This document shows positions 7,342 through 32,208 of a stretch of 64,000 bases of DNA, one piece after another. The stretch spans positions 8,895,751 through 8,959,750 of the forward strand of contig OZ037773.1 in NCBI GenBank assembly GCA_964035545.1. Reading direction: 5' to 3'. The notes under the pieces were generated by a model. That model was not told the origin of the DNA. It saw only the letters and a program-made list of their open reading frames with translations, and did no database searches. This stretch comes from Bugula neritina (taxonomy: Eukaryota; Animalia; Bryozoa). Position 1 is the stretch's first letter. Every line of letters begins with the position of its first letter. The translations under genes and the position numbers were made by a program.

Positions 7342-8650
7342 TCACCTCGAAGTTCCATGACCCATTACAATATAGGTAAATTAAAATAGCTGCTATAATA
7401 TAATACTACAAGTACAATGCAGTGTAAGTGGTTATTATTTAATAGACAAAGGTATTTAATATAGACTAATATTTATGTGTGGACCTGCAGTAGATGAGAA
7501 ATACAAGATGACTTGTAAGTCTGTACAGGATGTGATGTCACAGAGCAACAGGTATATTATGGTAAATCTTGCGTTACTTTCTCAATACTTTGGAGTTGTC
7601 TTCACACACAGTGTGAAATAAAATACGATTTAAATGAGTCTACATAGTATAATCCTGTGTAATAGTTAATTTTTACAAACATATCGGATTAAAAAGTAAA
7701 TGAATTTTTTCTGAATGAGTGGTTTTTATTCATGTCACAGCCTTTACTTGTCTTATTGTTTGGCGTCTAAGAACACAGCTTCTTGAAGCAATTAATTCAG
7801 TCTAATGAATGAGAATAGTCTGTTGGCAGATTATAGAGGCGTAGAACCAAAGACATTATGGTACTAAGGCTAATCATAACTATACTTAGATTTAACTATT
7901 TGAATATAATTATTATACTAAACAAAGCACTACTTAGCCTGAGAATATGAAGGTACTGAAGCTATAATGTTGATGAATGAGTTGGTTTTGATTTCTAAAG
8001 CTGCGAGCAAATGAATCAAAAATGCTTAATTTACTGGTCAACAACTGTGCTGTTATTCTGAAATGAGAATGTATATAAATTGTTTTCTTAACATTCAATA
8101 TAAGGTTTTGCTGAGCTGCTCAGTCTATGCAATCACAATTATCAAAACATTGTTATGGGTTTATTTAAAAAAGTCTACCAATACACTAATTACAGGCTTG
8201 ATTGGCTTTTGCTTTTAAAATTTTAGACTTGAGGCGAAAGAAAACAAAAGTGAAGCTTAGCATGAGAAATCTTATACAAACATTAGTATGACAAAAGCTT
8301 AAGTTTAGTTTTTGTAAGGGTTTTTCAGAAGTTTTGATTAGCTATTGTAGACTAAATTATTGTTTTAATTATGTTGGGTGCAACTTGTTGAAAGTAACTG
8401 TGAAGGGTAATGACAAAAGCAGTAAGCAGTCAATTGTTGTATAGGCATTACAATTTGAGTATAAAGAACAAATCGATGAGAGGGAGAGTCTATATTATAG
8501 CAGCTAGTAGCTGCATGAGTGCTATTTAGTATTCAATATCTGATTGTTGAATAGGCTTCAAACGTGTATATAAGTTTCTAAGAATCCTCGAATACGTCTG
8601 GCAGATGAGTGTATTTTAATTATTCTTTACATATTATATACATTGTGGCA

Positions 8651-11600
8651 ATGGAACAAGCAGTATCAGAAAGCTCTGGATCTGTGGACTTTAAAGGATG
8701 TAGTGACATACCACTCTGTGTTCTGGTTACAAGTAGAACTACTACTCTGCTTAAACGTGGCATAGCAACTCTTCTAGTGAGAAACACTCAATTTGATGCA
8801 GCAGACCTGTTTCACAATATTGTGAAGTTTCACTCTGATGGTTTGTCTGTAGCTGTTTTAAAAGAGATCAACATTATTGCTACTGTTTTGTCAAAGTTGC
8901 ATCACCCTAACCTTGTGGATATCCAAGGAATTCGTCTTGACATCTCATGGGATCATAAAAATAGAGTCCTCCAAAATGTGCCAAGTTCTTCAAAAATCCA
9001 GCTAAAGAACATTGAAGACAATCTAATACAAGAGATAAGCTCTGGTATCCAACTTCTGGAAGATGACATCATCAAATCTTCCCCAACTGTAGACACCCTG
9101 ACATTTGTAGAAGAAGCTATGACGAAACTCCAGTCCCCCACACCAGCTGAACAGAGAGAAGCCATAGAAGGTCTGGTGGCAGGACTAGTGGCTGGTGTCC
9201 TTGATAAATCTCCTCTCAGTCTGACACGTCTGAGAGACATGTTCCAGGGTGAATTTCCAGAAACTGTAAATGAGTGTCTTCAATATATAGACAGTAGTCA
9301 CTCTCAAATATTGGATAATGGTGGAAAGCTTGAAGGAGATCATGAAATACAAGAACTTCTGGCTCAATACAAGAGATGTGTGAAATTCTTTGTTGGTGAT
9401 TTAAGATGTCTTCCATTCAAATCATCAGATATTGTAAGTTCTTCCTATTAGAAGTCTACAACATAAATAAATGAGACAAAATCATAATAGTATTTGCAAA
9501 GCTTATAAAGAGTTTGCTATTATTTAACTATTTACAAGCTTGCAATAATTTTTAATATTGCAAGCACCTAAAAAGATTATTTCTATAAGCAAGCACTAAA
9601 AGTTTTACACCTATAGCTACCATCTTTGAAAATAAGTATAATCATACAAATGACCTTGATTTTGAAATTAAAATTTCTCATCAGTCTACTTGTTGTTTAG
9701 ATGTTTGAACTGTTTGACAAACTTTTCCTCAATGCTGAAAGCTGTAATGCCATATTGTAAAACTCCGACCAATTCTTTATCATTGTATAATTTTACAGAT
9801 CACCAAAGATCTGGTGGAGATGAGGCCAACTGCTGAAGAGTTGACACTCATTATTACAGGATATGATTGGTGAGTGACTCAATATGTACACCAGTTTAAC
9901 TACCTTCTGTTCTCTTACTTTGCAGAGTAGATAAACATATTGGCTCCTACTGTAATGTACACTAAAATATAATATTCTCCTCTGTCAGGGTGATTTCAAG
10001 AAGAAAGAGCTCTGATAACACAGACACAGATAGAATCAACTTGCTGGCAAAGTAAAATACTATATATTTATATCCTAGTGTTCATTGTGGTGTTAGCTAA
10101 CTTTATATATTTTGCCAGTTTCAAATAGTCCAAAGCTTTATACAGACTATACAAAGTAATATGGTGATTACCAGGATGTTTATATGTTTCCAGAGAACAG
10201 CATTCTATCTGGAGACAAGCCAACCACCATCTGGCTGGTTTATTAGATGGTAAGGAGTCTGGTGCCTTAGATGAGACTCCTGGAGACACTGAAGAGCTGC
10301 AAGAGAAGGTAACTCTATAAGTAAATCATAACTATTAGCCTAGGGCCACACGGTGCGTATTTTCGCATGCAAAAATTGAAATCACGAGCAAAGGTGTCCA
10401 CTGTGCGCGTTGAGAAAACGATCGCACTTGTTGCTCTGCATTCTCAACGCAAGTGCGAATCGTCTCTGTCGTCGTCACCTAATTGGCTGGTATAGTTATT
10501 CAGCGAGCCCAATTTTTTTATTTTAGTGCTACATTCCAGTAAATTGCGTTTTATTAAAAGCGAGTGCAATTTAAAAATGAAAGCTTTATTTATCACGCAT
10601 CACTGACGCTACAGTGGACACCTTTGCTACTTGTGATTTCAATTTTCCCATGTGAAAATACGCACCGTGTGGCCCTAGGCTTAGTTTATAATCTTGATGC
10701 TGATAATCAATACTCTATAACACATGTCATTAACCATGCTAGGGATTTTTTGATAAGCTTTGAAATGCTTTCAACTCAAACCAAATACAGTTTATGAACA
10801 TGGATAATGTATATATGTTACTGGAATGAGTTATAAAACTAACTGTAGCCATTGTATGAAATAGCATGCCATTAAAGCAATCTTTGAGGCCAAAATGAAT
10901 TTTATTTTATATTTTTATAGAATACTGATTTGACTACACAAGAAGTAAACAGTCCTGCACAAACCTCTTCTCAAAGTAAGTACAATAAACTTGTGCTCCA
11001 GTCATTTTTCCCGAATTATGATTAAGTATCAGTACTGATACCAGAATGCTGTTTGTAACAGTGTATTGGGTCTTCTATGAGTTTATTTCATTACGGTCTT
11101 TTATTAGCAATTGCTCTTTACTAATGAGATATTTTATTGTACATATTCTGACTAATACTAACAAAATAGTAATTGCTAGTATACGACAGTTTCATTTTAG
11201 ACAATATGCATTACACCTAGACAAAACTACTCAAATTATGATTATTTTGATGCATCTATAAGACCTACAGATTAATTTCCCCTTAAATTATTTTTTTTAT
11301 TATGAGCAGGAGGAATAAATTTCTTCATTACAGAAAAATTAGTTCACTTATAAAAGGCATATTTTCATTATTAGCCTTTTATTTCAGCTACACCCACTTC
11401 AAAGCATCTGGGTGGCCTTCAAACAGTTCCTTCAGATGTCCCACTGTGTGTTTTGATTGTGAACAGAATTAGAACATTGTTGGTGAAAGCATTAGCCTTT
11501 CAGTTGGTTAGAAAATCAGAATACAACATGGCCGACCTTATTGATGGACTTTCTTCAGTACTTCCTGCCGATTATGGTAAAACCAGCATCAAAGAGCTCA

Positions 11601-14600
11601 ACATCATTGCTAAAATCATATCAAAGATTCAACCTAGAGAAGCAGTAGAAGGTCAGAAAACTCCCGGCATCATTAAATGGGACAACAAATACAACAGATT
11701 GAAAAACGTTCCAACAGGGTTGAGAGTTCAACTGGCAAGTCTTCCATCTTGGTCACTAAAAGTCCCTTGCTTGAACATCTCTTTATTAGAAAAAGACATC
11801 ATCAAATCTTCTCCAACAGTAGAGACATTGACACTTGTCGAAGAAGCTATGAAGAAACTGGAGTCTCCCACACCAGCTAAACAGATAGAAGCCATAGAAG
11901 GTCTGGTGGCAGGACTAGTGGCTGGTGTCCTTGATAAATCTCGACTCAGCTTGACACATCTGATAGACATGTTCCAGGGTGAATTTCCATCATATGTCAT
12001 AAACCTCCTCAAAACTATCAACAATAACCAAGTCCAGATAATGGATAGTGGCAAGAAGATTGAAAATATGGAGTTGAGAGAAGACCTTATCACTGCATTC
12101 AATGATTGTGTGACTTTTCTTATAAAAGACTTCAAGTGTCTCCCAGTCACAGCACCAGAAGAGGTTAGTATGTTAACATAGCATGTTTTGTTTGCTGCTT
12201 TTAATAGTCATGAAAAGTGGTAGATTTTAGAAAGACAATACAGATATTTAAAGTAGCTATTATAATTTTTATTTACATCTCCAAAATTTTATTTTGTGGC
12301 TATAGATACTGTAAACTTCAATCACAGTCGCTATCTCCCTGATAATCCCTGATTGAAAGTTGTTTTCAAGGTGTTGAAAACTTTTTTCTATTGTGGCTAA
12401 TGCCTTTTCTAACATATAACATTTGCTGAGATTAAACTCATTGACATTCACTTATAAGCCAGTGCTCTAACTACTAGACTACTGCTGCTCTTGTGAGCAG
12501 TGTGGAGCCACCATAACTTCTTGGTTTGTAAACAGAATGCTACACAGTTGGTTTAAGGTCATACTTTTCATTTTCTGGCTCTTTGCCAGGTGCTTTATGT
12601 TCTATATGAACAATGTTCCACTGATAGCTCGAACAGGTTGAATGTCACAGGAACAAAAAAATATGAAAAAATAAAGAAACTTATGTTCTCCAATATACTT
12701 TTTTATTTTTTTCAAAAGCCAATTCATGTTTAAGTTATAGCTTGTTGAAAAACATAGTCCCCCTTCCACATTCTTTTCAATTTATACGCTCCTGACTTGT
12801 TATTGTGTCTCAATATGCCTTGTATTTGAGTGCTTGTTAGTCTCGCTTCACTAACTTTGCCTATACTTCACAAGTGCCAGTGCTGCTGGCTCAAAAGCTA
12901 AATGTTATAAACTGTCAGCTAAAACCCAATCTTGTATTCCTAGGTTGGTTGGCCTAAATAAAACAATAGTCAAATCATGATTTCATGTTTTAAAAATTTA
13001 CTCTATTCTAACCTGCTGCCTAGCTAGTTCTATTTTTGATGTATAATTACAAAATTTGTGATACATTTTTTTGGCAACCATGTAATTTATAAAATGCAGT
13101 AATGGTACTTATAATATTATATTATTATCATTATAATATATTATATAGTATTATGTGTGTTTTTATTATCCTGCATAATATCTAATTTATTATTGTTGTT
13201 GTGCAAACAAGTGCAATTAACCTAGTTTTCAAAATGTACCTCTAAATTATCAGAATATCAGTTTAGATATGTTCATGCTTTGTAAGGTAAACCTAAAAAA
13301 AGAGGCTGTATTCCCAAAGTAAAGGGTGTTGAACTATGAACTATATTAGATTAGCCACTCTGCTACCAAGTGCATCAGTATAATATTATATGAATAGCTC
13401 TGATGCTTTGTCTCCGGTGGCTGGCTGCGATATGATAACTTGGCCAACTTCCACGAGTTTAAAATTGGCGCAATTATTCAAGAGGTTACATACTGCACAG
13501 AGCTAGCAGTGATAGTAACCTTGCTATTGGCAGTACTTATTACAACTGCCAGCATATAAGCTGCATTGTAGAATGCCGTTGGGGCAGGCTAGTAAAACCA
13601 AATTCTGCTCTCTAATATACCTTAGACAAAATGCAGCAACATAATTTTTAGTTTCAAATTACATTTGCCACCCTTACATGAGCTGTGGGCTTCATAAAGA
13701 TTCATATGATTAGAGATTTATGCTATAGGCCCTATCTGTGCTAGTGTATGATGAAAATAACACACCATTGTCAAAGTTAACTTCAAGTATGTTGTTTTCC
13801 AGAAACTCAGTAATGTCCATTTATCTCTCGCATACAAATACTTATGTAATAGCATACAGTTTAAGTTTTATTTTAGAGCACATCTGCAAACTCTACAATA
13901 AGAGCTTGCTTTACCAGTCTATTTCAGACCTGTTTTTGTAGCTAGTAATACGCAAGCTACTTATTTTTAAACTTTTGGGTTATTTGTTCAAAACCATTAG
14001 CTTTGCTAGTAACCCGAGACTATTGCAACAGTTGACTGCTATCAACATGAATTGACAGCCTAATAATTATAACCCTTTTGCGGCGCGAAATATTTATGTA
14101 ATGATAGTTACTCATATAGTGCGCATTTTATTAACGATGACTGCGTGGTCTAGAGGTTAGAGGCGTCAGCGAGGAGTTAGTTGGTTATGGTTCACCCCTG
14201 TTTTGTCGCAATTTTTTTTGTCAACTTATGCAAATCCTACGCATGTATAATAAATATGGCTATAATTGTAAAGTTTTTTTTTAACTTTTGTTCAACAGTA
14301 AGACAACATACATGCATAATAATTAGATACTGAACACTGGACTAAACCTGAAATTGATCTTATAGAATACAATGTACTTAAAATAATCATATGTTAATTA
14401 GAGAAACTGAAAGTTCACCTGCTGCTCTATAGACAGACCTTTACTGACAAGACTGCAAAGTGAAGTGATTTAGCTGAAATTAACTCTGCCAAACAAACAA
14501 AGAATTATGTTGTGCTGAGGCATTTTCAATATATTATTGTAACATAGTGAGATGATTCAGCTAAGTGCTAATGTAAAACAGGGAACATTATATTGGCAGA

Positions 14601-17600
14601 AATCCAATAGACTGCCAATTTGTGCGAGAGGGTACTATATGTTATTGTGATAGCGCAGAGCGGCAAACGTACTAGGAATGTTATAATTAGTCACAGGAGC
14701 GTAGCTAGAACCACCATATGAAGAATTTAGAAAATTGCAGTGAAACTTGCAAAATGGTGTATGTTTTTACCAAATTGTGAAGAGCATAAACAGAATTTCA
14801 AAAAACAAAGAAAGTATATTAGAGAAAACATATCAAGGAATGTCAAGTTTCACTTTTATACTTTATAAAATGAATCCCCTGTGCTACAGCAGTGGAACAT
14901 GGAGGGTGTAAAATTTTACTTATTATGCAACAACTTTTTCAAAAAAATTTTTATTGAAAAATTAAAAAAGTATATGAAAGAGGAATGCAAGAGCTATCTT
15001 TTCATGTAAAATTTGTTAATGTGAGACAAAAACTGTTCGAGCTATCCCCTGGAAACCGTTTATATATAACATAAAGCAGTGCCTGAATCTGGAAAGTAAT
15101 GACCTTAAACCAACTGTGTAGAGTTCTATCAGAGAAAGTAAAAGTGTTCCTGAAAAAATTAAAATGGACTTACGTTTGTAGCTATAGTAGAACATCAAAC
15201 CATCTGCTCATTTCTGAGCATTTTTATTCATAGTTCTTGATATTTGAATGTTTAGCTTGCTCTGAACTTTAACAGTGCTATCATTGTTGCAGGCATGTAA
15301 TGAATATCTACGGCACTCTTTAACTGCCGATGAGTGGGAAATGACATTCTCACAGTATGACAGGTATTATGAGGCTATAAGTATTTTTTGTTATTTAAAT
15401 TAAATATCTTTAGCAAACATATATGAAAACATTGATGTTGTATTGTTTAATGTTCTTCACATGTTAAGAGAATTTGCATTTTGCTTTAAGACTTTTATAT
15501 AATGTATTTTTCCTACTAATTATAACTTACCAATAATATGTGCAAACCAATCAGCTACATTTGTAAAGTATGAGAATCAACACGAAAAATATTGAAAGCA
15601 TAGTTGGCCTGATTAAATGCAAGCTAGGTTTGCAGAGAAATGATATTTATATTGCTCATATCTCTAAAACGCTTTCTCGTTACTTGTAGCTACACTCCCT
15701 CCAAAACTTAGATGTGTTTAATTCTTCTCAATGACAATGTGTATGTGATTCTCTCCTCAAAAACAAACAGTGGCAGTTTTTGTCAAAATATGGCAAACTG
15801 AAAGTGCTAATTTTTTCTTTTCTCAACTTCAGAATCATCAGAAATATTGACAACACTGATGGAGCTAGGACAGAGGAAATAAATCTTTTAGCAAGGTAGG
15901 ATACTGGACGATCCTTAGCACACTTTCTCAGTGTAATCAGTTTTACTGATATAAATAAGCTCATTGTATGCATTCACAAGTTTCACTAATCTGAAGCCAT
16001 AATACAAGTTGTATCTTATTTTAGTGAACAGTTCAGTTTATGGAAGAAAACAAATCAATTGCTGGGAGATTCTATTGGAGTACCAAACATTGCTGACATA
16101 AAACCCAGCTACAAGGTACACTTCAAAACAGTCTTCTATAGGGGTAACGGGAGCGCAACGGGCCGAGTTTTGCAGTTTTTGCTCTCATTCGTCTGTTTTT
16201 CAAGTTACTAGTTCAATAATCTCTAGTCTTAATGCTGCATCTGTTGTCTATTACAGGTATCAGTTTATTGTTTCTATCTCTTTCACAACTTTCAGAATAA
16301 TGAAGTTTTCTTGACGAAAAAATCGGCCCATTGTGCCCCAGTACCGGGGTACAATGGGCCACTGGGTGGAACACAACAAATATATTGAAACTTTGCAGAT
16401 TTTGTTGCATCTGATTTTTATTTATTTAATATTACAAACAAATAAAATTATTCTTTCAGATCTACAGCAAAATTCATGTTTTAGCTGTACAGTTTGTGCC
16501 ACCACGGATAGCAGAGGAAGGCAAAATCAAACGAACATCACTTGGTTCTACGGTGCCATTATCATTACTGTTTAGAACTAAAAATGTTTTCTTTTACACT
16601 CCAGAAAAACTTTTAATAGAAAAAAACTTTAGTAACTTGTACTACATAAGTCTGAGTGGACTTTTTTCTATGAACTGTAGCTTATAAGGTGCATGGCTTC
16701 GGTTTGTGGCTAGAGTATGGAAGGAAGAGGGGGGAGCAAATGAGCAAATCACAATTTATTTTAGTCAAATACATCTATATTCCTTCAATGATATAAAGTA
16801 TAATAAATATCATGGCTATCTACTAGTAGCAACAGCAGAGTGTTTTGTATTATGTATAAAATAGCAAAGCTTTAACCTCACCAGATGTATATATTAAGGG
16901 AGCTTCACCTTGTAGTTTGGTAGTCTTACCATGATGTCTTTGATATTTTACAAAAAGGTCAGAAATGGCTATATCTATAGATTTTAGTAACATTTCAATC
17001 AACTTTTTGGGCAAACAAACTAATAACAGTGATCAGGGTACAATAATCAGGTGGCCCATTGTGCCCCGGTCAAGGTGGCCCATTGTGCCCTGAATGGCCA
17101 AATTTGACACAAACGTGCCTTAAGAAAAGTTTATTTTAGAGTTTGCTGTTATACTAGTTAAGTGTAATAGTATTATATTTAAAGGATTGCTCTATCTTAG
17201 TTTATTACAATCACATTATAATTATGAACTATAATCTAATGTGTATGCAAACAATTGTGACTTTGCAAAGGGATATATGCCTAGAAAACAGCTTTTCAAA
17301 ATTCCAATTTTGAGGGAGGTAAAATTTTCAGCCATGAAAAAGAATAGCCTAATACGTGACGTGTGAACGCCAGTAACTATGCTGCACGTGCTAACTATAA
17401 CGCTAGTATTCAAGGTTGCTGAGCGCAACATCAACCAATAACGCTCAAGCAGTTACAGTGCGCTATATAGGTCAGCTTTGGTGGGCCCGTAATATTGCAC
17501 AATCTGACCTAGTTTAGATCGATCGCAGGCATTCATCCTAAAGAATGCATGTTTTTGCAATGCTTTTTTCTATGTTTACAAGCAAAATATGGCCTAATGT

Positions 17601-20600
17601 TATCACATACATGTTATTAAACATGTCAAAAAACTATAGATTGAGATAATTCACATTTGCACTTCTATAAATATACAAATTACGAGCTGAAAGATCACAT
17701 CTCACAGTCATATTTCTATAGTTATTCATTTGTATAGTCACGTGACCAGCAGGAATGCTGGCGCTGTTACGTCACATTTCCCAGCTCATTTCAAAATCGG
17801 CGTTTTGGCTGTTACCAATCTACACCCTCAACTTCAACTAACTTTTTCTACCTTTGGTCAAATGCTTTTTGTCAATGCATGTTTAGAAAAACACAATAAT
17901 ATGTGTGTTTGACCTAAATGGCCATTTATTAGACAAGATAGAGCAATCCTTTAAAGTTCACTAAAATATCTTTATTTGGAAATCACAACTGATCACTACG
18001 AACACATATCTAAAACTGACAATATATACAAACAAAAAGGATAAAGAGATTTAGAACACAAAGGAACAAAGCACAACTATATTAATATTTATAAAACAGG
18101 TTACATAACTGCGTGCACATTACATTAAGCAATGTAGAGACAAGCAATGGCAACAATATCAGTAAAATCTATGCTTGTTGCTTTTGAGTGTAAAAAGTTA
18201 TAAAGCTATTTTACAAAAAGTAGGTAAAAACGGTTTTTCACTCGCCTTTTCAACACTTATGTTCCGCAAGTGTTGAAACTACAAAGGCTGAATAATTATG
18301 TCAATATCTTTTTATGAAAAAAAAAAATCGCAATTCCAAGTCAATAAGTTCTCTCACAATTTGGCCGGCTTTTTGTACTCCTATGACCGTTGTGGCCCCG
18401 TTACCCCTGTAGTGAATTTCCCAATTCACTATATTATGTGAGTCTACTTATACAAAGCTACTGCACCAGGTTGATCACGTTATTATTTACAAAGGTACAA
18501 TAAATGAACTACTACTAAATTAATTGCACGATTACATAATACTGAGCACTTTGTACGCAACTACTCTATGCCAAGTTCCAAGCTGCTCTGCCCGGCTAGC
18601 TACTTAGCTTGCTTCCACTATGAGTAGCTAGCTCCACCTGATATCAATTAACAGTCCTTCCTGATTGGCTAGTATTAGTCGTGCCACTGTCGACCATAAG
18701 ATGCATGTCGGCTGGGAGTCGATGCCTCCACAATAAGATAACATAGAGTCGACCCTTTCGATATATAAACTAGACCACTAATTGCATTACTAAATCCACT
18801 ACACCCCTACTACAGTTATTATACTATAGTGGCAGTAATACATAGCACAAGTATATAGTAGTGATATGCTATCTTATTCTTTGTACTATATTTATAGAAG
18901 AAAGATGAATATTCAACGCTAGTTGGAGAAGCTGCTAGCTACAGCAGCTCTCAACTTGAAGGTATGAGTCTAATGGAGAATCTGAAACTAAGTGAAGGAG
19001 CTGCCGGAGACAGCAGCTTTCAAAGTAAAGGTATGACTATATATGATGTATATAACATGTTAAGTAAAACTATTAAAGTGTAGTGAACTAGAAATGCTAA
19101 ATAATTCATTACTTTACATATTATATTTAACCTACAAACTTGAAATCACTTTGATTGTGTTGTTTTATACATAGTATCTTTATATATAGAGGGTTGCCTA
19201 CAGTTACTAGCTATATACATTAAACAATATGTCACTAATAACATTTGATGAAATGCTTTTTTTGATAATATTATATGTGTATTTTATGCATATCCTTCTA
19301 TTTGAGTATATAGTATTTATTTATAGAATTTGCTTCACAGCTTTATATCTATTTATAATATAATCTAGTAATATCGGTAATGTTGCAGCTGGTACAGAGC
19401 TTCAATACAGTCTAGGTGATTACTCTGTTATCTCTGGAGGTCCCTACACTGATGTAACTGATGGTGGAGGGCATAATATACTAGTTGGTAGAGAGGGAGG
19501 GTTTGATGTATTGGATACTAGTAAAGTATCTGAATCTAGCAGTAGTGTAGGAGGGAGGAGATATGAGATAGTGAAGTCTGTCAGAATAGAAGGGGTGGGT
19601 TTTGTTTGGTCAATACAGAGATATGAGAGCTGTATATATACTCTGTGTAGAGTATATGATCAGTTTCAAGTAGTAGTGTTTGATGCTAACACATATGTTG
19701 AAGTAAAGAGATGGTCTGTACCAGAGGTTGTATCACTCCTTACTAGACTAGCTGTGTGTGATGAGAAGGTCTATATGGTAGATCTCATACATAAACAGCT
19801 AACTGTATTCTCTACAGATGGTAAACACCTCACTAATATTACACATTCTAGTTTCATTGAGCCCTCTGCCCTCTCTGTATGCCCTCCACACAGTATCATC
19901 ATATGTGACTACCCAGCTAACAGAGTACATAAACTAGACACTACAACACATAACATCATATGGAGTTCTACTGCAGTGAAAAGACCTGTAGCAGTATGCT
20001 GTGACCACACACGTGGAGAAGTGTGGGTGTGGCCTTATGATACTGACTGTCTATCCATTCTAGACTCTGAGACAGGTATGCAGCTAATCGTGTTGTGTTT
20101 TTAGTTAGTGTCATTACTAACTCACAGTCTATATATAAGGTTTTAGTTCAAACAATTCTTGTGAGCTACCAGGTTTCAACTAATATTTTGTGCACTGTTT
20201 TGTGGGCTAATAATTTTGCTAAACTATGACACATGAAACAATAACAAAGAAACGTATAAAATTGTAGTTTTATAAATTCTATATATCAATATGCCACTTG
20301 AATTCGTTATAGATTTTACTAACTTAATGTTATTACAAACGTCTAATATACCTTTATATTTAAAGTCCTATGTGTTGACCTAGTTTTCTCATTAGTCTTG
20401 AAAAATTTTTCAAATGTAACAGGTAGTTTTATTCAACATTGAAAAATTTTTGAGTACTGTACCGTGTGGTAAAATTACAACTAAGTATATATTTGTATGA
20501 AATTTGTATAAGGTTTACTTTATATAAGTATAAAATAAAACGTAATATTATTAGATGGTATAAAGGGAAAATGTGGTTACAATTGGTGTGTACACTATAG

Positions 20601-21107
20601 AGTTATCTCATCACAACAGTTGGAAAACTTTATGGTAATGTCCGCTGCAGCATCTCAGCTAAACATTCTATTCATGAAATAAATCAACTTCTTGCAAATT
20701 TAACAGAGACCTAGATTCTAGAATCAAATAGAATCTTTGATTTTCTGGTGCAATTGAAAACAGAGAGGGTAACAATATAATATATGGAAAATAGAAAGGG
20801 TAACTAGATGTAATGGATATTGAGAGAAAAACTCCATGTAGTGGATAGAGAGAGGGAAACTCTATGTAATGAATTAGGAGGGTACATGAATTTGAGTTAT
20901 TTAATTTTTTCAGGTGCGAAACTTGAACTTGTAATTTAATCAATAATACATGTTGTAGGACAGCAGAGGCAGATAGTAAGGGATACTCGACCCTTGCGCC
21001 GCTTTGTAATGGAAAGTCTTCTTCCTGGTATGTGTGTTGTGGAAGGACAACTCTGGGTAGCATCTTCATCTCGTGGACTAGTAAAGATTAGAATTAACAG
21101 ACACTAA
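8651..21107 (+). CDS. Array gene copy 1: two tandem catalytically degenerate HEPN-like modules + linker + NHL-like beta-propeller (~1018 aa)
   Basis: Hand-spliced GT-AG exons with consistent phases: 8651-9433, 9799-9869, 9989-10051, 10194-10308, 10921-10975, 11388-12163, 15293-15363, 15833-15895, 16025-16115, 18898-19030, 19389-20075, 20959-21107 (3057 nt, open). Exon sizes match copy 2. Propeller motifs include LAVCDEKVYMVD...LTVFSTDG, PSALSV..IIICD..RVHKLD and PVAVCCD..GEVWV. Start codon is probable, not certain. Confidence 0.85.
10338..10680. mobile_element. PIF/Harbinger (Tourist-like) MITE in an intron
   Basis: TTA|gcctagggccacacggtgcgtatttt...aaaatacgcaccgtgtggccctaggc|TTA; ~70-bp imperfect TIRs; empty site in copy 2 (~26375). 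Confidence 0.9.
12543..15118. mobile_element. Second, inverted copy of the CACAG-terminated non-autonomous transposon, in intron 6 of copy 1
   Basis: TA|cacagttggtttaaggtca...tgaccttaaaccaactgtg|TA. Reverse complement of 4706-7268 with few differences. Confidence 0.9.
17163..18124. mobile_element. Short solo-LTR-like insertion (TGTAAT...ATTACA, 5-bp TSD TTAAG), itself interrupted
   Basis: ttaag|tgtaat...attaca|ttaag. The empty site is visible in the first MITE copy (~2720, gttaagcaatg). Confidence 0.75.
17183..17950. mobile_element. TTAA-target non-autonomous DNA transposon (Kolobok-like AGG...CCT termini)
   Basis: TTAA|aggattgctctatct ... agatagagcaatcct|TTAA. Confidence 0.8.
18408..18803. 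mobile_element. Solo LTR (TGTAGTG...CACTACA, 4-bp TSD CCCC; Gypsy-like)
   Basis: TG...CA termini with a 4-bp duplication; related copy at 35546-35899. Confidence 0.85.
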
Positions 21108-24100
21108 TGATTTTCTGTTTGCTCAGTGAAGACAAAATTCTGCATTAAGTGACTGCTATGAAACTTTTTGTCATTTAGAATAACTAGTTTAATTATTTTT
21201 CTGCTGCAGCAGAAATTCAACTAAACTATATATATTGCATTTTACATGATTTACCAATCATTTATATATTAAACGTAATAAAATAAAGACCTTTCAAAAT
21301 AGTTTTTCTATAGTTTCTGTATTTTAGAGCTTGTTTTATCAACTAATTGAACTATCAGATATTCAGTAATTCATATAGAAATATAACCTCAAATTTGATA
21401 ATAATAAACTGTATAGATATAGATATACTTACTGCATAGGATTAATATTTTATGTAAATACATAAAAATAAACTTCTACCATCCAGTGTGTGTCTAATTG
21501 TCCATAATTCACATTATATTTCATGTGTGCGTTTCATGTGCTCGTAAATTATAGTTGCATATTGTTTTGGTGTCAGGGAATCAATTTGAATCTAGACGTA
21601 GTATAGTGTAGTTTAGTTTCTAATAATAAAAACGAGAAAATTCCAAAAGTTGTAAACTTTATTTTTTAAAATATTTTATTGAGCAAAGTAATATAAAATT
21701 ATTAAAAAAAGTATAAAAAAAATAATAAGAAATATGCAAAAATAAAAATTATGCAAAGCCATAATTGATCAGAGAAAACAAAACAAGTCTTCAGTTGGAC
21801 ACAGAGATTGAGCTAACTGATTATTGCAAAAAGTCACAGGTGTTGAATACATTGAATATATATGTATTATAGTATACTGAATTGTCTCTCCTTTAATCTG
21901 AATGTGCCATGTATCTCTACATGTCAACAAAGTAGAAGTTCACTTACTCCCATATATATACTAACATCACTGTGAGAGACCTGTATAAGCTGGCTATAGC
22001 TAGACTTGTGGTCGCCTGTCACATTAAACTCAATTTTAAAATAGAAAATATCAATAATATATGCTTGTAATCTGTCAGCATCTAATAATGGCCAAGTATT
22101 CACACAACTAAAGGATATTAATTGATGAAGGATCCAACAACCCTGGTGCTTCAGATAGTCTTTTGGAGACTGTCAAGAGATTCCTGGGAAAGCAACTCCA
22201 TATGTGTAGCATAGAGGTAGTGAGATGTCCATACTTTATAAAACATTGTATTAATGGCTATATATCCCAGAGAGCATGGTATCATTTGATAGAATGTTAC
22301 TTCGACTAGTTGCATAACATTTCATGAGACTTAGCCTTTATAACTGCGCAATTTAGCATATGGTATAAGCCATGAGGTAATAATGTGTCTGCAACACGTA
22401 TGTGTGAACTGTAGCGAAATTTTATATTATTTCCTGCAGCAGATCAACTTAACATAATTTTGATTTTTAAAATTGAAGCAAATTTTTCCTTTCCCGTAAA
22501 GATGACACACTGCTTAGATTTTCAATTGACACATGATGAGTTTTTAAATGTATGAGAATAGAATTTCTATCTGGTGTATGCCCTAGTCCTTGTTTACTTA
22601 ATATATTTTATAACTCCATAAGTTAGTTGTGTGCTGTCATGGTTTTGAAAAATCAATTTTAATCTACAATTTAGATAGTAATGTTATTTAGTTTTCAACA
22701 ACAAAACTGAAACAATTTGAACAGTTGTGAACTTCATGATATATGAGTTATCTAGCAAATTTATAGATTACGAATTTCATAAGAATTGGTCAGTATGTAT
22801 TTCTGTAATGTGGGAATATAAAAACCTGTCAATTCACTACATACTTCTACTTGCATGTTTAGTATATGTAATACATTGACATACAGAGTCAAAGTGAGAA
22901 ATAGGAGTTATCAGTCCACCAACGTAATACTTGGTGGAAAAGAAATTTGTTGTGAGTTCTATGAATTTGTTTGCTTAAACTTGAGCAAAAGTTGCTCATT
23001 AAATATATATTATTATTTCAGTTGCAAATGTGTCAAAATGGTAGCATATATTTAATGAATATATAGGTAAATACAATATAATATAGTTATAATTTTTAGG
23101 TTTGTATGTGGGTATTTGTGTATGATCCAATTGGCGCATTGTAGACAGTTACGTAAACTCCAAATGATTATAGCGTGAGAATAATTATAATATGATAATG
23201 TGTATCGTTTATACAAGATACAATAATAAGAAAACTTTACATCAGTCAGAAAGCTAATACAATTGTTTACACAAGTGTTTACTGTTAGCCCAGGTAGTCT
23301 TTACTGACACCTGAGAATATTTTCCCTCGTTACCATAGGCTGGCCAGCTTCATCCTGATTGGAGAATTGGGGAGCAGTCACATCATCAGCCACGTGGTCG
23401 CCTTATGACAAACGGGGCAATATAGGAAAACGCTATGACTAGTCACCACCCATGATATATATAATATTATATATATATATCACGGGTGGTGATATATGTA
23501 TAATATATATCACCTCAAAGTTCCATGACCCATTACAATATAGGTAAATTAAAATAGCTGTTATAATATAATACTACAAGAACAATGCAGCGTAAGTGGT
23601 TATTATTTAATAGACAAAAGTATTTACTCTGGACTAATATTTATGTGTAGATCTGCAGTAGATGAAAAATACAATTAGATGACTTGTGAGTCTGTACAGG
23701 ATGTGATGTCACTGAGCAACAGGTATGTTATGGCAAACTTTCCTTTACTTTCTCAATACTTGGGAGTTGTCTTCACACACTTAAGGCACAATAAAATACA
23801 ATTTAAATGAGTCTACATAGTATAATAATGTGTTATAGCAAATTTTTTACATAAATAGAATTGAAAAGTAAATGATGTTTCTCAGCGAGTGGTTTTTAGA
23901 CACAGCCTTTACTTGTCTTAGTTTAGAGTCTGGAGAACACAGCTTTTTGTAGCAATTAATTCTGTCAAATAAATGAGAATAGTTTGTTGGCAGATTATAG
24001 AGGCGTAGAACCAAGGACATTATGGTACTGAGGCTAATCATAACTATACTTTGATTTTACTGTTTTAATATACTGGTATTATACTAAATAAAGCACTACT

Positions 24101-24708
24101 TAGCCTGAGAATATGAAGATACTGAAGCTATAATGTTAAAAAATTAGTAAGTTATTGATTTCTAATGCTGAGAGAAAGTGTATCAGAAATGCTCATTGAA
24201 TTACTGAGTAACAATTGTGTTGTTATTATTAAATTGTTTGATCATCATTCTATAGATGTTGCTGAGCTGTCTATGCAACTGCAAGTGAAAACATAAGGTG
24301 CAGCTTATATATTTGAAAAAAAACTTTATACATACATTAGGATGACAAAGCAGGGCCTTCAAAGGAGTTGATTAGCTGTAGCAGAATATAATAAGACTAG
24401 GATCAGATGTATTGATTTCATTTTGGTACCTTTTTTCAACTAATTGTGAGAGATTAATCAAAACAAAAGCAGAAGGCAGTCAATTGTTTCATAGGCATAA
24501 CAATTTGGGTCTAAAGGATCAATAAAGGGGAAAGACAATCTATATCTAAACTAGCAGATGAGTACTAGCATTCAATATCTGTCAGGTAAATAGATCTTTT
24601 GCTTGTATAACTTTCTAGAATCTGCATAAAAAACTATTTCTTTTTTGTATGACTATGTCTCACGGATTACTGTAGTTTAACTACTTTTTACATATAAACA
24701 TTGCGGCA

Positions 24709-27700
24709 ATGGCACAGGCAGTATCAGCAAGCTCTGGATCTGTGGACCTTAAAGTATGGAGTGACATACCACTCTGTGTTCTGGTTACAAGTAGAACTAC
24801 TACTCTGCTTAAACATGGCATAGCAACTCTTCTAGTGAGAAACAGTCAGTTTGATGCAGCAGACCTGTTCAACAATCTTGTGAAACTTTACCCTGATGGT
24901 TTGTCTGAAGCTGTTTTAAAAGAGATCAACATTATTGCTACTATTTTGGCAAAAGTACATTATCCAAACCTTTTGAATATCCAAGGAATTCGCCTTGACA
25001 TCTCATGGAATCATGAAAATAGAGTCCTCCAAAATATGCCAAGTTTTTCAAAGGTCCAGCTAGAGAACATTGGAGATAATCTAATACAAGAGATCAGCTC
25101 TGGTATCCAACTTCTGGAAGATGACATCATCAAATCTTCTCCAACAGTAGAGACACTGACACTTGTAGAAGAAGCTATGAAGAAATTCCAGTCTCCCACA
25201 CCAGCTGAACAGAAGGAAGCCATAGAAGGTCTAGTAGCGGGACTAGTGGCTGGTGTCCTTGATAAATCTCCACTCAGCTTGACACATCTGCTGGACATGT
25301 TCCGTGGTGAATTTCCAGAAACTGTAAATGAGTGTCTCCAGTATATAGACAGTAGTCACTCTCAAATATTGGATAATGGTGGAAAGCTTGAAGGAGATCA
25401 TGAAATACAAGAGCTTCTAGCTAAATACAAAAGATGTGTGAATTTCTTCATTGGTGATTTAAGATGCCTTCCACTCAAATCATTAGATATTGTAAGTTCC
25501 TTATATTGGAAGTCTACAACATAAGTAAATGAGACAAAAAATATAATATTATTTGCAAAGCTTATGAAGAGTTCGTTATTATTTAACTATTTACATTCTT
25601 GCAATAATTTTTTATGTTGCAAGCACCTAAAAAGATTATTTCTAAGCAGGCACTAAAAGTATTGCACCTATTGCTACCATTTTTGAAAAAAGGTATAATC
25701 ATACAACTGACCTTGACTTTGAAATTAAATTCCTCATCAGTCTACTTGTTGTTTAGATGTTTGAATTGTTTGAAAACCTTTTCTTCCATGCTGAAAGCCC
25801 GAGGTGCTATATTGTACAACTCCAACCAATTGCATATATCATTGTATTTTTCAGATCACTAAGGATCTGGTAGAGATGAGACCAACTGCTGAAGAGTTGA
25901 ACTTCATTATCACAGAATATGATGAGTAAGTGACTCAATATGTACACCAGTTTAACTCTTTCTATTCTCATACTACACAATGTAGGTATAAGTGTATAAG
26001 CTATTACTATAACACTAAAATATAATATTATATTCTGTCAGGGTGATTTCAAGAAGAAAGAGCTCTGATGAAAGAGATGCAGATAGAATCAACTTGCTAG
26101 CAAGGTAAGAGACTATGTATGCATATCCTAGTGTTTACTGTGGTGTTAGCTAACTTTATATAATTAGTCAGTTTCAAACTGTCCAAAGTTATGAAAAGTA
26201 ATATGGTGATTACTAGATTTTTTATATGTTTCCAGAGAACAGTATTCTATCTGGAGACAAGCCAACCACCATCTGGCTGGTTTATTAGATGGTAAGGAGT
26301 CTGGTGCCTTAGATGAGACTTCTGGAGACACTGAAGAGCTGCAAGAGAAGGTAACTCTATAAGTAAATCATAACTAGTAGTCTATAATCTTGATGCTGAT
26401 AATCAGTACTCTATAACACATATCATTAAGCAAACTAGGGATTTTTTGATAAGCTTTGAAATGCTTTCAACTCAAACCAAATACATTTTATGAACATGGA
26501 TAGTGTATATATCAGTTACTGAAATGAGTTATAAGAATAGCTGCATGCGTGTGCCATTGTATGAAATAGCATGCCATTAAAGCCATCTTTGAGGCTAAAA
26601 TAAATCTTATTTTATATTTTTATAGAACACTGGTTTGACTACAAAAGAAGTAAATACTTCTGCACAAAGCTCCTCTCAAAGTAAGTACAATAAACTTGTG
26701 TCTCAGTCATTTTCCTAAATTATGATTAAGTTCTAGCATTAGTACCAGAGTACTATTTATAACAGTGTATGAGATTTTCTATGAGGTTATTTTATAGCGG
26801 CCTTTTGTTAACAATTGCTCTTTACTAATGAGATATTTTATTGTACATATTATACTAACTAATACTAACAAAGTAGTAATTGCTAGTATACCCCAGTTCC
26901 ATTTTAGACATTATGTATTAGACTAAGTCAAGGCTACTCAAATCATGATTATTTTGATGCTTCTAAGACCTACAGATTGATTTTCCTTTAAATTATTTTT
27001 CTTGTGACATTATTTTATTGTGAGCAAATCATAGCTTAAATTTTTCATTACAAAGAAAGTAGTTCACTTATAAAATGCATGTTTTCATTATTAGCTTTTT
27101 TATTTCAGCTACACCAGCTCCAAAGCATCTGGGTAGTCCTCAAACAGTTCCTTCAGACATTCCGCTGTGTGTTTTGATTGTGAACAGAATTAAAACATTG
27201 TTGGTGAAAGCATTAGCTCTTCAGTTGGTTAGAAAATCAGAATACAACATAGCCGACCTTATTGATGGACTTTCTTCAGTACTTCCTGCCGATTATGGTA
27301 AAACCAGCATCAAAGAGCTCAACATCATTGCTAAAATCATATCAAAGATTCAACCTAGAGAAGCAGTAGAAGGTCAGACAACTACCGGCATCATTAAATG
27401 GGACAACATAAACAACAGATTGGAAAACGTTCCAACAGGGTTGAGAGTTCAGCTAGCAAGTCTTCCACTTGGGCCACTAAAAGTTTGTTGCTTGAACATC
27501 TCTTTATTAGAAGGCGTCATCATCCAAACTCTACCAACCGTAGAGACATTGACACTTGTAGAAGAAGCTATGAAGAAACTCCAGTCCCCCACACCGGCTG
27601 AACAGAGAGAAGCCATAGATGGTCTGGTGGCAGGACTAGTGGCTGGTGTCATTGATAAATCTCCATTCAGTTTGACACGCCTGATAGACATGTTTTGTAG

Positions 27701-30700
27701 CGAGTTTCCACCATCTGTCATAAACCTCCTCAAATTTATCAACAATAACCAAGTTCAGACAATGGAAAGTGGCAAGAAAATTGAAGATATGGAGCTGAGG
27801 CAAGTACTTGTCGCTGCATTCTATGACTGTGTGATTTTCCTTATCAAAGATTACAAATGTCTCCCAGTCACAGCACTAAAAGAGGTTAGTATGTTAACAT
27901 AGCATGTTTTGTTTACTGATTCTAATAGTCATGAAAAGTGGTAGATTTTATGAAGACAATACAGATATTTAAAGCAGCTGTTATAATTTTTATTCACATC
28001 CCCAAAAGTTTATTTTTTGGCTATAGATACTGTAAACTTTCATTACAATTGCTATCTCCCTGAGAACCCCTGATTGAAAGTTGTTTTCAAGGTGTTGAAG
28101 ACTTTTTTCTATTGTGGCATTTATGACAGAAATCCTTTTTTAACATCCAACATATTTTGCTTCAATTAGACACATTGACATTCACTTATAAGCCAGTGCT
28201 CTAACTACTAGACTACTGCTGCTCTTGTGAGCAGTGTGGAGTCACCAGAACTTCTTGGTTTGTAAACAGAATGCACGAGTAGTTCTATCAGATAAAATAA
28301 AAGTGAATTCTTGGTATAATTAAAATGTTGGAACGTCTGGTAAAAAAAGGTTTTCATCATGGGGCTAGAGATTGTTTTTTTATTCTGGCATTTATGTCAG
28401 CATGCCTTTTGTAACATCACTGATGGTTTTTAATAAGAGTAGACTCACTGACGTTCACTAAGCCACTAAGCAATGTGGATCTATCAAAACTTTTTGGTTT
28501 CTATCAGAATGCTATAGAGTTCCATCAGATATAAAAAAGTGAATTTTTGGTAGAATTAAAATGGACAGATTTGTAACTATAGTAGAGCATGAATCCATCC
28601 GCTCATTTCTGAGCCATTTTATTTAGTTTTTAATATCCGATTGCTTAAAGCTTGCTCTGAACTCAATCACTGCCATCATTGTTGCAGGCTTGTAATGAAT
28701 ATCTACAACTCTCTTTAACTGCAGATGAGTGGAAAATGACATTCTCACAGCATGACAGGTAATATGAGACAATACACAAGCTATTATTCCTCATCACAGC
28801 TCTTGCAATATATGGACTTGGCTGAAATATGTATATGTAAATAATCTACATGTATAATATAAGTAAATCAACAGTTACACTCTCTGAGATGAAAAGTATA
28901 GTTGGTTATTTGATTAAATATAAGCTATAATGTTTAATTCAAAAAATTATATTTATGTCGCTTATTACTGGAAAGTTTTCTTGTGCAACTTATTACTATA
29001 CTTTCCCTGAAACTCAGATATCTTCAATTCTTTTCAGCAGCAATAATAACTGTTTCTTGAAAACATAGCTGTGATAGTTTTAGTCAAAATCCACAAACTA
29101 AAAGTGCTAAAATATTTTCTTCTCCACTTCAGAATTATCACAAATATTGACAACACTGATGGAGCTAAGACAGAGGAAATCAATCTTTTAGCAAAGTAAG
29201 ATTTTGAGCCATTATTAAATATTAATATCTGGACAATTGTTTACTTATATTAATTTACAAGTTTCACTATTCTGAGGCCATAGTTCAAGTTGTATCTGGT
29301 TGTAGTGAACAGTTCAGTTTATGGAAAAAGACAAATCAGTTGCTGGGAGATTCTATTGAAATACCAAACATTGCTGACATAAAACGCATCTACAAGGTAA
29401 TTGACAACTATAGAGCAAAGCAAATTGTTCTACTATAGTTATATACTACTAGCTCTAGTACAAGTAGCAGTTGTAGCAGTTGTAGTAGTGGTGGTGGCGA
29501 TGGCGGTGGTGGTGATGGTATCATCAGCAGTAACCATTTAAGGATATAGCTTAGTTGCTTTAGTTGGTCTGACCAGAATAGCTGAAGAAGTATTATATCA
29601 TGTGCTTTATATAATTTGATTGCTTGGTAAATTATCAACCTTGATGGTTCCATTTATGTTTTTGTTATTCCTTGTACTATTTATAGAAGAAAGATGAATA
29701 TTCAACACAAGTTGGAGGAGCTGTCGGATACAGCAGCTCTCAACTTGAAGGTGTGACTCTGATGGAGAATCTGAAACTAGGTGAAAGAGCTGCCAAAGAC
29801 AGCATCTCACAACGTAAAGGTATGACTATAATGTATAGCATGTCGTAAAACATTTTAAGTAATATGAACTACATTTATGCTAAATAATTAATTAGTATAA
29901 TTGGGGTATTGAACCTGCAAATTTGAGATCAGTTAGATTGTCTTATTCTGAGCAAGAGTCTTTGTGTGATGGTTAGCGAACGTATATACTACTCTCACGT
30001 GTTGGGCATCCAATAAGACTGAAGCACGTGATTACCCCTTCCGGAACAGGATGCTTCAGTAAGACAGATAGAGTAGTTAATTAGTAGGAGCGCGTTAGTA
30101 AATGTAGTAGGCTTGTATTAGATTGTAAATGTATTTTCGACACTGGATGTGTCTCTCTTTATTTTATATGAGTACAACAAATATAGTTCATTGTGTCACG
30201 CTACCAACAGAGTAATTCATCTAGTTACTAAGTGAATCCACCATCATTGCACACACGCAGAACCCACCCTAAGATGATAATTGGCAGAATTATTACATTT
30301 GTATACAGAGTTGTCTTCTTAGCTGCTGTGTAAAGTAATGATACTACAGTTAATTGCTATTTCTGCAAATTGAATGCAAACAACCATGAGTGTACAAATT
30401 GCTTTATATAATATTTTATGTGTATTTTATACAATATTGAGTTATAATACATTAAAGCATTCATTTATAAAATTTGCTTAAAAGCTTTATTCATTCTAAT
30501 ATATTCATTTATAATATAATCTGTTAATATATGTATTGTTGCAGCTGGTACAGATTTTCCGTACAGTCTAGATGATTACTCTGTTATCTTGGAAAGTTAC
30601 TGCTATGACGTAGCTGATGGTGGAGGGCATACTATACTAATTAGTAGATGGAAAGGGTTTGATGTATTGGATACTAGTAGTAAAGTATCTGAATCTAGCA

Positions 30701-32208
30701 GTAGTGTAGGAGGGAGGAGATATGAGATAGTGAAGTCTGTCACAATAGAAGAAAGTGGTTTTATTCGGTCAATACAGAGATATGAGAGCTGTATATATAC
30801 TCTGTGTAGAGTAAATGGTCAGCTACAAGTAGTAGTGTTTGATGCTAACACATATGTTGAAGTAAAGAGATGGTCTGTACCAGAGATTGTAGGATACCTT
30901 ATTAAACTAGCTGTGTGTGATGAGAAGGTATATATAACAGATTACAGACATAAACGGCTAACTGTATTCTCTACAGATGGTAAACATCTCACTAATATTA
31001 CACAGTCTATAAGTTTCATTGAGCCCTCTGCCCTCTCTGTATGCCCTCCACACAGTATCATCATATGTGACTTCTCAGCTGACAGAGTACATAAACTAGA
31101 CACTACAACACATGACATCATATGGAGTTCTACTGCAGTGAAGATACCTGTAGCAGTATGCTGTGACCACACACGTGGAGAAGTGTGGGTGTTGTCTTGT
31201 TATACTGACTCTCTGTTCATTCTAGACTCTGAGACAGGTATGCAGCTAATCATGTTTATTGTAAGTTTAATGCCACCACATACTATATATATAGTTTGAT
31301 GTATATGTTGTTTCGGTGTAAATAGGGCCTGTAATACGGACAGGTTTCAAATCTTAACTTTGTGCAATTTTTATATGGCTAATAATTCTGCTAAACCATG
31401 CAGCATATGAGACAATATGAGACAATAGTAATACAACTTCTGAAATTATAGCCTTGTAATTTCTATATACCCAACTTAATGCATACTTGACTACATTAAA
31501 TTTCAATTACTTTTTATTATTGCAAACAGGCCTAATATAATCATATTTCGGTCCCCTTTGTTAGGCTAGTTTTATCATTCTCCTAAGAAAGTTCTTGAAA
31601 CATAATGGCAGTTTTACTCCATATAAGCTACATTCTGTTTAAAAGTAGAACATCTCCTTCAGCATAGAACCTTGTGTTCCAGAGAGCCCTGCACCATGTG
31701 GTTATTGAGTCTAAACGCATGTATAAAATTTAATATAGTATATAGTCCATATAAATATATAATTAAACATATTAAGGTAGAAGTTAATTGTATATTTGCA
31801 ATAAATGTGTAGACTGTAGAGTTATCTCATCACAACAGTTGGAAAACTTTATGGTAATAACTGCTGCAGCATATCAGCTAAACATTCTAATCATGAAATG
31901 AATGAAATTTTTTTCAACTCATATGAATTCTAGATTCTAGAACAAACATTACTATTTGACTTTCTGGTGCCATTTATATGGAAAATATAAATTATAAGTT
32001 ATTTATTATTTTCATGCAAAGGTAAAGCTTGAATTTGGAATTTAATAAAATATATATACTAATACATTTTGTAGGAAAGCAGAAGCAGACAGTAAGCAGA
32101 AGAGAAGACTTTTTATCTTCTCCTTTTGGTATGTGTGTAGTGGAAGGACAACTCTGGGTAGTATCTTCCTTCAGCGGACTAATAAAACATAAAATTGTCA
32201 CCCACTAA
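24709..32208 (+). CDS. Array gene copy 2: two degenerate HEPN-like modules + NHL-like beta-propeller (~1015 aa)
   Basis: Exons 24709-25491, 25855-25925, 26042-26104, 26236-26350, 26626-26680, 27109-27884, 28688-28758, 29133-29195, 29306-29396, 29687-29819, 30545-31237, 32075-32208 (3048 nt, open). Same phases as copy 1. Confidence 0.85.
29965..30297. mobile_element. Solo LTR (TGTGAT...ATTACA, 4-bp TSD TTTG)
   Basis: tttg|tgtgatgg...attattaca|tttg; absent from the matching intron of copy 1 (~19180). Confidence 0.8.

Follow-up and report, generated by a model that had tools for sequence, protein, structure and literature searches.

Two neighbouring genes of the bryozoan Bugula neritina each encode two HEPN-like modules that lack the canonical catalytic arginine and histidine and the glutamate of the ExxxR motif, yet all four modules remain open reading frames (ORFs), as an earlier note on this DNA had observed. 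The genes lie in a stretch of 64,000 nucleotides (the window; positions 8895751-8959750 of the contig that we call C9, in a genome of 216 Mb; G+C content about 33%), and each ends in an exon for an NHL-like beta-propeller. The explanation that we favour, and to which we would give a probability of about 0.6, is that the modules are catalytically dead HEPN-like domains which selection has kept as the conserved part of proteins with a diversifying propeller. The arginine and the histidine of the Rx4H motif would have been lost, together with the ExxxR glutamate, in an ancestor of most of the family. The modules would then be the conserved N-terminal part of the protein and the C-terminal propeller its variable recognition part. 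We infer that the modules have lost their activity and now have a binding or scaffold role; by analogy with Roquin, sacsin and Swt1, they may form a non-catalytic domain for binding or assembly, directed at RNA, nucleotides or a partner protein.

All features of the two genes are on the forward strand. The four module frames are uninterrupted in the ORF listing. Modules in the first exon are termed a and those in the sixth exon b. Module 1a lies at 8651-9433 (261 codons, with an ATG start and a GT donor) and module 2a at 24709-25491, each in an exon of 783 nucleotides (nt) and each identified by alignment. Modules 1b (11388-12163) and 2b (27109-27884) lie in exons of 776 nt, again with open frames, splice sites and alignment in agreement. 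The series of exon lengths reported earlier (783/71/63/115/55/776/71/63/91/133) is indeed the same in both genes, and all ten exons are bounded by AG and GT. For the gene models, AG...GT-bounded, stop-free combinations of exons with these lengths were searched for. Gene 2 contains exactly one such combination and gene 1 contains the homologous one. Splice sites are canonical throughout both models and the frame is unbroken across all eleven exons. The exons were concatenated for this frame check only; sequence searches and fold predictions were run exon by exon.

The four modules in two genes of the earlier note are real, but its count of the array was too low. Three further intact array genes lie upstream of the window (C9:8863266-8895132), two of them with a single module (a) and one with two modules, so that the array consists of eight modules in five intact genes. 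The lengths of the module exons are the same in all eight, and splice sites are kept in all five genes.

MAFFT alignments were used to compare the modules with a solo paralog in the same window (37472-38194, forward strand; L001), in which ExxxR and RNNIVH are intact and which was the reference for the lost residues. Its RNNIVH stands opposite HSQILD in modules 1a and 2a, QVQIMD in 1b and QVQTME in 2b. The glutamate of its TEAVLR (the ExxxR motif) stands opposite threonine in the a modules, arginine in 1b and lysine in 2b. Both correspondences are those that had been read off by hand. Homology of the modules to paralogs that bear RNxxxH, also claimed earlier, was recovered by phmmer searches, in which the modules are connected to the RNNIVH paralog both directly (E about 1e-5) and by way of intermediates from clusters on contigs C6 and C8 (E of 1e-11 to the active paralog and 1e-34 to module 2a).

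In a survey of the HEPN superfamily, helix 3 ends in Rx4-6H, in which the arginine is followed by a polar residue, and there is an Ex3[KR] motif whose acidic residue belongs to canonical helix 2; inserts between helices 2 and 3 are known (PMC3710099). In the phrase "helix-1 Glu" of the earlier note, helix 1 means the first helix in the bryozoan proteins, which may or may not correspond to the canonical helix 2 of the survey. Rx4-6H at the end of helix 3 is absent from the modules and present in L001 (RNNIVH), L003 (RNKVVH), L026 (RNRSVH) and the distant database protein P0017 (RNEIVH). The acidic residue of Ex3[KR] is likewise absent from the modules and present in the solo paralog, and the C6 and C8 clades have retained the glutamate. 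Since the arginine and the histidine of Rx4H and the ExxxR glutamate are lost, RNA cleavage by the modules at the canonical HEPN site is almost certainly impossible.

This leaves the suggestion that the modules are enzymes by means of other residues, for instance the histidine that has taken the place of the former arginine in the a modules and the aspartate at the former histidine. There is a precedent in the HEPN-T members, where D replaces H and another conserved H is found elsewhere (PMC3710099), and the former histidine position is occupied by an acidic residue (D or E) in all eight array modules. However, the histidine of the a modules is tyrosine in other Bugula copies (P0005 and P0007) and is Q or K in the b modules. 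The modules have few invariant polar residues in common, none of them adjacent to the motif. Such an activity is very improbable.

The frames are held open by more than chance and recent origin. At this base composition, the probability of an open frame of 261 codons is about 4e-9. The earlier expectation that the ratio of nonsynonymous to synonymous change (dN/dS, omega) would be below 1 was borne out by codon models, which gave an omega of 0.46 for the five a modules and 0.53 for the three b modules; omega = 1 was rejected by likelihood-ratio tests (p = 1.3e-6 and p = 1.6e-3, respectively). Pairwise Nei-Gojobori estimates range from 0.19 to 0.70 among a modules and from 0.31 to 0.51 among b modules. 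The introns of genes 1 and 2 differ by 18 indel events in 1281 aligned nt (14 per kb), while the module exons of the same genes have none in 1559 nt, against about 22 expected at the intron rate (P about 3e-10). The introns of the two genes diverge (p = 0.137) to about the same degree as the exons do at synonymous sites (dS). As an internal control we used the propeller exon, taken from all five array genes: its omega is 1.53 (pairwise 0.9-2.1), compared with about 0.5 for the modules. The modules are under purifying selection and are kept intact, and the propeller evolves fast, under a regime that ranges from neutral to positive selection.

Gene conversion has been at work in the array. Between a and b modules, a tract of about 60 codons (alignment columns of about 140-200) has been homogenised (9059-9243 with 27510-27694; 11789-11989 with 25117-25317). 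Synonymous differences in it are 0.04-0.27, as against 0.5-0.99 elsewhere, which argues for conversion between the modules. In addition, gene 1 (10124-11590) and the two-module gene upstream of it (about -5100 to -3640, counted from the window start) share a stretch of about 1.4 kb, running from exon 4 into the first part of exon 6, at 98-100% identity, while its flanks differ by 8-20%; the pattern of identity marks it as a recent conversion between genes.

As to the fold, the AF2 model of module 2a has a predicted local distance difference test score (pLDDT) of 88 and a predicted template modelling score (pTM) of 0.89; the corresponding values for the active paralog are 81 and 0.83. The four-helix up-down core with an insert appears at moderate strength in these models. 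Residues of about 46-176 of the module form the insert, a helical bundle of about 130 residues with a short hairpin, and by the secondary structure of the model the motif is located where the penultimate helix ends and the next loop starts. In a structure search of all PDB representatives, the matches that span both termini are mostly HEPN-superfamily chains for both models. Those of the active paralog include 2hsb (Z 9.6), Roquin 4txa (9.5), 1wwp (8.5), sacsin 3o10 (8.0), 1ufb, 5yep and Cas13 9fcv; those of the module include Roquin (8.7), 2hsb (8.5), DrrA, Csm6, GlnE and sacsin. Other HEPN chains among the matches over both ends are 1wol, Roquin 4qik, the HEPN toxins 7ae2 and 8xdj, and chains of the MtlR type. 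The HEPN-type fold that the earlier note had assumed thus agrees with the predicted structure and with the position of the motif. Judging from these two, the family probably has a HEPN fold.

Several results weigh against our explanation. Scans of all modules and 24 family members with Pfam and NCBIfam returned nothing at cut-off, a profile search of PDB sequences gave matches at chance level only, and for neither model did Foldseek against PDB find a match at E <= 0.001. The VIA Z-scores, 6.5-9.6, are of a size that helical bundles often reach, by the tool's own warning, and weight was therefore placed on the enrichment of HEPN chains and not on single scores. An arginine two residues before the former glutamate is invariant in all 18 motif-less modules that were aligned, and the motif-bearing members have asparagine there. 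Gene conversion blurs pairwise omega and helps to hold the frames open. In another B. neritina assembly (GCA_010799875.2), a b module has a premature TAA at codon 100 (L027:12705), and one copy on C8 (C8:7184180-7184932) has an internal TAG, so that some copies die and evolution of the family is by birth and death. Finally, no transcripts of the array genes were found, the database matches being genomic sequences or predicted models; a word search with the b module returned a-type proteins only and no transcript evidence.

The blank Pfam, NCBIfam, PDB sequence and Foldseek searches, together with Z-scores below 10, would be expected if the family were not HEPN at all. It would then be a lineage-specific helical bundle, RNNIVH would be coincidental and the "lost residues" would be meaningless. 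Against this, HEPN chains fill most of the matches over both termini in two independent models, and RN-x3-H (whose residue after the arginine is polar) at the end of the penultimate helix, Ex3R and the insert fit the published definition. Moreover, four divergent members share the motif (L001, L003, L026 and P0017). A weak lead in the same direction comes from the ESM Atlas, where the language-model neighbours of the solo paralog include DUF4145-like and RiboL-PSP HEPN clusters; the module gave no usable match there. Among curated HEPN families (CL0291 and related), the best was HEPN_RiboL-PSP, which reached E 0.059 in one member, below cut-off. A search of the animal's own genome with PF18738, the HEPN domain of DZIP3, gave one match at an unrelated locus (C6:308951) and none to the modules. 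On balance, a fold other than HEPN is unlikely.

Stops in some copies elsewhere, the evident conversion tracts and the small difference between copies (only 8-14%) could also be taken to mean that the modules are young duplicates in neutral decay, with frames still open because of recency and gene conversion. Against this, omega = 1 is rejected, 0 indels were counted in the module exons against an expectation of about 22, none of the five genes has lost a splice site, and the omega of the propeller is clearly different. We consider neutral decay the least probable of the alternatives, and reject the identification of the modules as neutral pseudogenes on the evidence of omega, indels and splice sites.

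We return to the reading of the modules as dead domains under selection, and to the age of the loss. A profile search of the genome contigs found 23 modules, on C1, C5, C6, C8 and C9. Rx4H is present in three (L001, L003 and L026), one has the arginine only (L002, with RHQIIL), and 19 lack both residues, namely the eight of the array and 11 more on other chromosomes. As far as the alignments tell, the loss is not peculiar to the four modules of the window. The maximum-likelihood tree has the motif-bearing L026 and P0017 at the base of the insert-bearing clade and shows a and b to be sister groups. Because of this topology, the loss is most simply seen as one old event that would predate the duplication into a and b and would be shared by at least 19 modules.

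Outside this genome the family is sparse. Its nearest database proteins are hypothetical ones of Bugula neritina. A profile search of 1.84 billion representatives returned 12 proteins at E <= 0.001, of which eight are Bugula-type, two spurious and two weak. The two spurious ones, bacterial Big_2 repeat proteins among the four weak matches, were rejected. The family looks lineage-restricted, made up of Bugula-type sequences.

Solo paralogs flank the array on C9. They are the RNNIVH gene at 37472, a copy upstream with RHQIIL (C9:8858944, about 36.8 kb before the start of the window) and a copy downstream with RNKVVH. A spliced relative (P0002) is found in a public assembly. Many HEPN ribonucleases (RNases) act as dimers. 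With such partners nearby, the dead modules might be decoys or regulators of the solo motif-bearing proteins, or a and b might pair as an intramolecular pseudo-dimer, and they would then inhibit, sequester or activate an RNase. The earlier note had proposed that the tandem mimics a HEPN dimer and is a decoy, inhibitor or allosteric scaffold; the nearness of the solo motif-bearing paralogs is the one finding that bears on such a role. A variable propeller would suit a sensor that controls a partner. Nevertheless, the clustering is equally well explained by an origin through tandem duplication, and for the motif-less clusters of C6 and C8 the census shows no match with the motif less than about 1 Mb away on the same contigs. 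The tandem is not essential in the array, because two intact genes carry one module (in the order module a, linker exons, propeller), and this weakens the reading as a pseudo-dimer. Such a regulatory role is possible, though we would not call it likely.

The propeller is the other half of the proteins, which have about 980 residues when they carry two modules and are shorter when they carry one. Its exon is the last of each gene (19389-20104 in gene 1; 30545-31299 in gene 2), begins at a phase-1 acceptor that is kept in 5/5 genes and encodes about 235-250 residues. The gene 2 exon has one NHL repeat in Pfam, at 20.9 bits against a cut-off of 20; DUF5128 is below cut-off. At least 149 copies of this exon family are spread over the genome (C2-C9), many of them in large tandem clusters on C3, C5, C6 and C8. 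None of them adjoins the HEPN-like clusters of C6 and C8. When the ORF listing of these clusters was examined for C-terminal domains, retroelement ORFs were all that lay between the modules. These ORFs are GC-rich, with stretches like reverse transcriptase and integrase (L057-L063; C8:8237000-8243500; C6:15633000-15650000).

Several known systems can be compared with these genes. HEPN domains are known to have undergone lineage-specific expansions in animals (PMC3710099). The bryozoan family resembles the superfamily in its predicted four-helix core with an insert, and in motif-bearing members with Rx4H at the end of the penultimate helix and Ex3R; it differs in that the modules match no curated profile and in that the insert, about 130 residues, is unusually large. 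Motif-less, inactive HEPN members are also known and are predicted to bind nucleic acids; they include the tandem dyad of Swt1 (PMC3710099). Like Swt1, the genes described here have two tandem motif-less HEPN-type domains in one eukaryotic protein. In Swt1, however, the dyad is fused to PIN, whereas here it is fused to an NHL-like propeller and single-module genes coexist. Pfam scans of the module and propeller ORFs found no PIN domain, and the other exons are too short for one.

Roquin is a close structural analogue, its HEPN domain (4txa, 4qik) being the best or second-best match (Z 8.7 for the module and 9.5 for the active paralog). The HEPN domain of Roquin has no catalytic activity; another domain is inserted into it, and its role is to bind RNA. 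The bryozoan insert is a helical bundle by the model, and the bryozoan proteins have no RING or zinc finger and no sequence similarity to Roquin. With the DZIP3/hRUL138-like expansions of marine invertebrates the family shares lineage-specific HEPN domains fused to recognition or signalling domains, for which a role in defence has been proposed; unlike them, the bryozoan modules do not match PF18738, and the DZIP3 family mostly keeps the motif. NHL propellers are absent from the listed fusions of DZIP3-like HEPN domains (PMC3710099). TRIM-NHL proteins share the C-terminal NHL-like propeller, but the N-terminus here consists of HEPN-like modules, and no exons for RING, B-box or coiled coil were seen. 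Pfam scans of the module and propeller ORFs found neither RING nor B-box, and inspection of the short linker exons, by eye alone, showed no such motif.

Non-catalytic HEPN domains as such are already known; this family and its fusion to an NHL-like propeller are new, and no paper was found in a literature search for links of HEPN to Bugula neritina or to NHL propellers. The family adds to the HEPN superfamily a branch that all profile libraries have missed and that is seemingly confined to bryozoans. If our explanation is correct, it would be a clean natural case in which a catalytic domain has become a conserved module without catalysis. Purifying selection on the part derived from an enzyme, diversification of the propeller and concerted evolution across the array together make up a pattern that is typical of families for recognition and defence. 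One may speculate further that these proteins are sensors of the innate-immune type, in which the propeller recognises a pathogen or foreign RNA and the dead modules pair with solo HEPN RNases that they activate or release. We regard this as a long shot. Were it true, the system would be an animal two-component counterpart of the sensor-gated HEPN nucleases RNase L, Csm6 and Cas13.

The remaining exons are short linkers. In gene 1, exons 2-5 are at 9799-9869, 9989-10051, 10194-10308 and 10921-10975 (71, 63, 115 and 55 nt; AG/GT boundaries, frame kept), and exons 7-10 at 15293-15363, 15833-15895, 16025-16115 and 18898-19030 (71, 63, 91 and 133 nt; splice sites present). Exons 2 and 4 of this gene match a predicted B. 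neritina protein (P0004). In gene 2, exons 2-5, which belong to the unique stop-free combination and have splice sites, are at 25855-25925, 26042-26104, 26236-26350 and 26626-26680, and exons 7-10, also with splice sites, are at 28688-28758, 29133-29195, 29306-29396 and 29687-29819.

Some minor observations concern the ends and annotation of these genes. The NCBI annotation of the other B. neritina assembly splits the gene at the TAA of L027:12705. The 133-nt exon 10 (18898-19030 and 29687-29819) contains an internal repeat of about 60 nt with a donor-like GGTATGA; in the single-module genes exon 10 has a shorter form of 58 nt that ends at this donor-like site. An acceptor-like ttcag lies two bases before the ATG in the three upstream genes, while genes 1 and 2 have gtggca and gcggca before the ATG (8639-8650 and 24697-24708), so that the 5' ends of genes 1 and 2 may be built differently.

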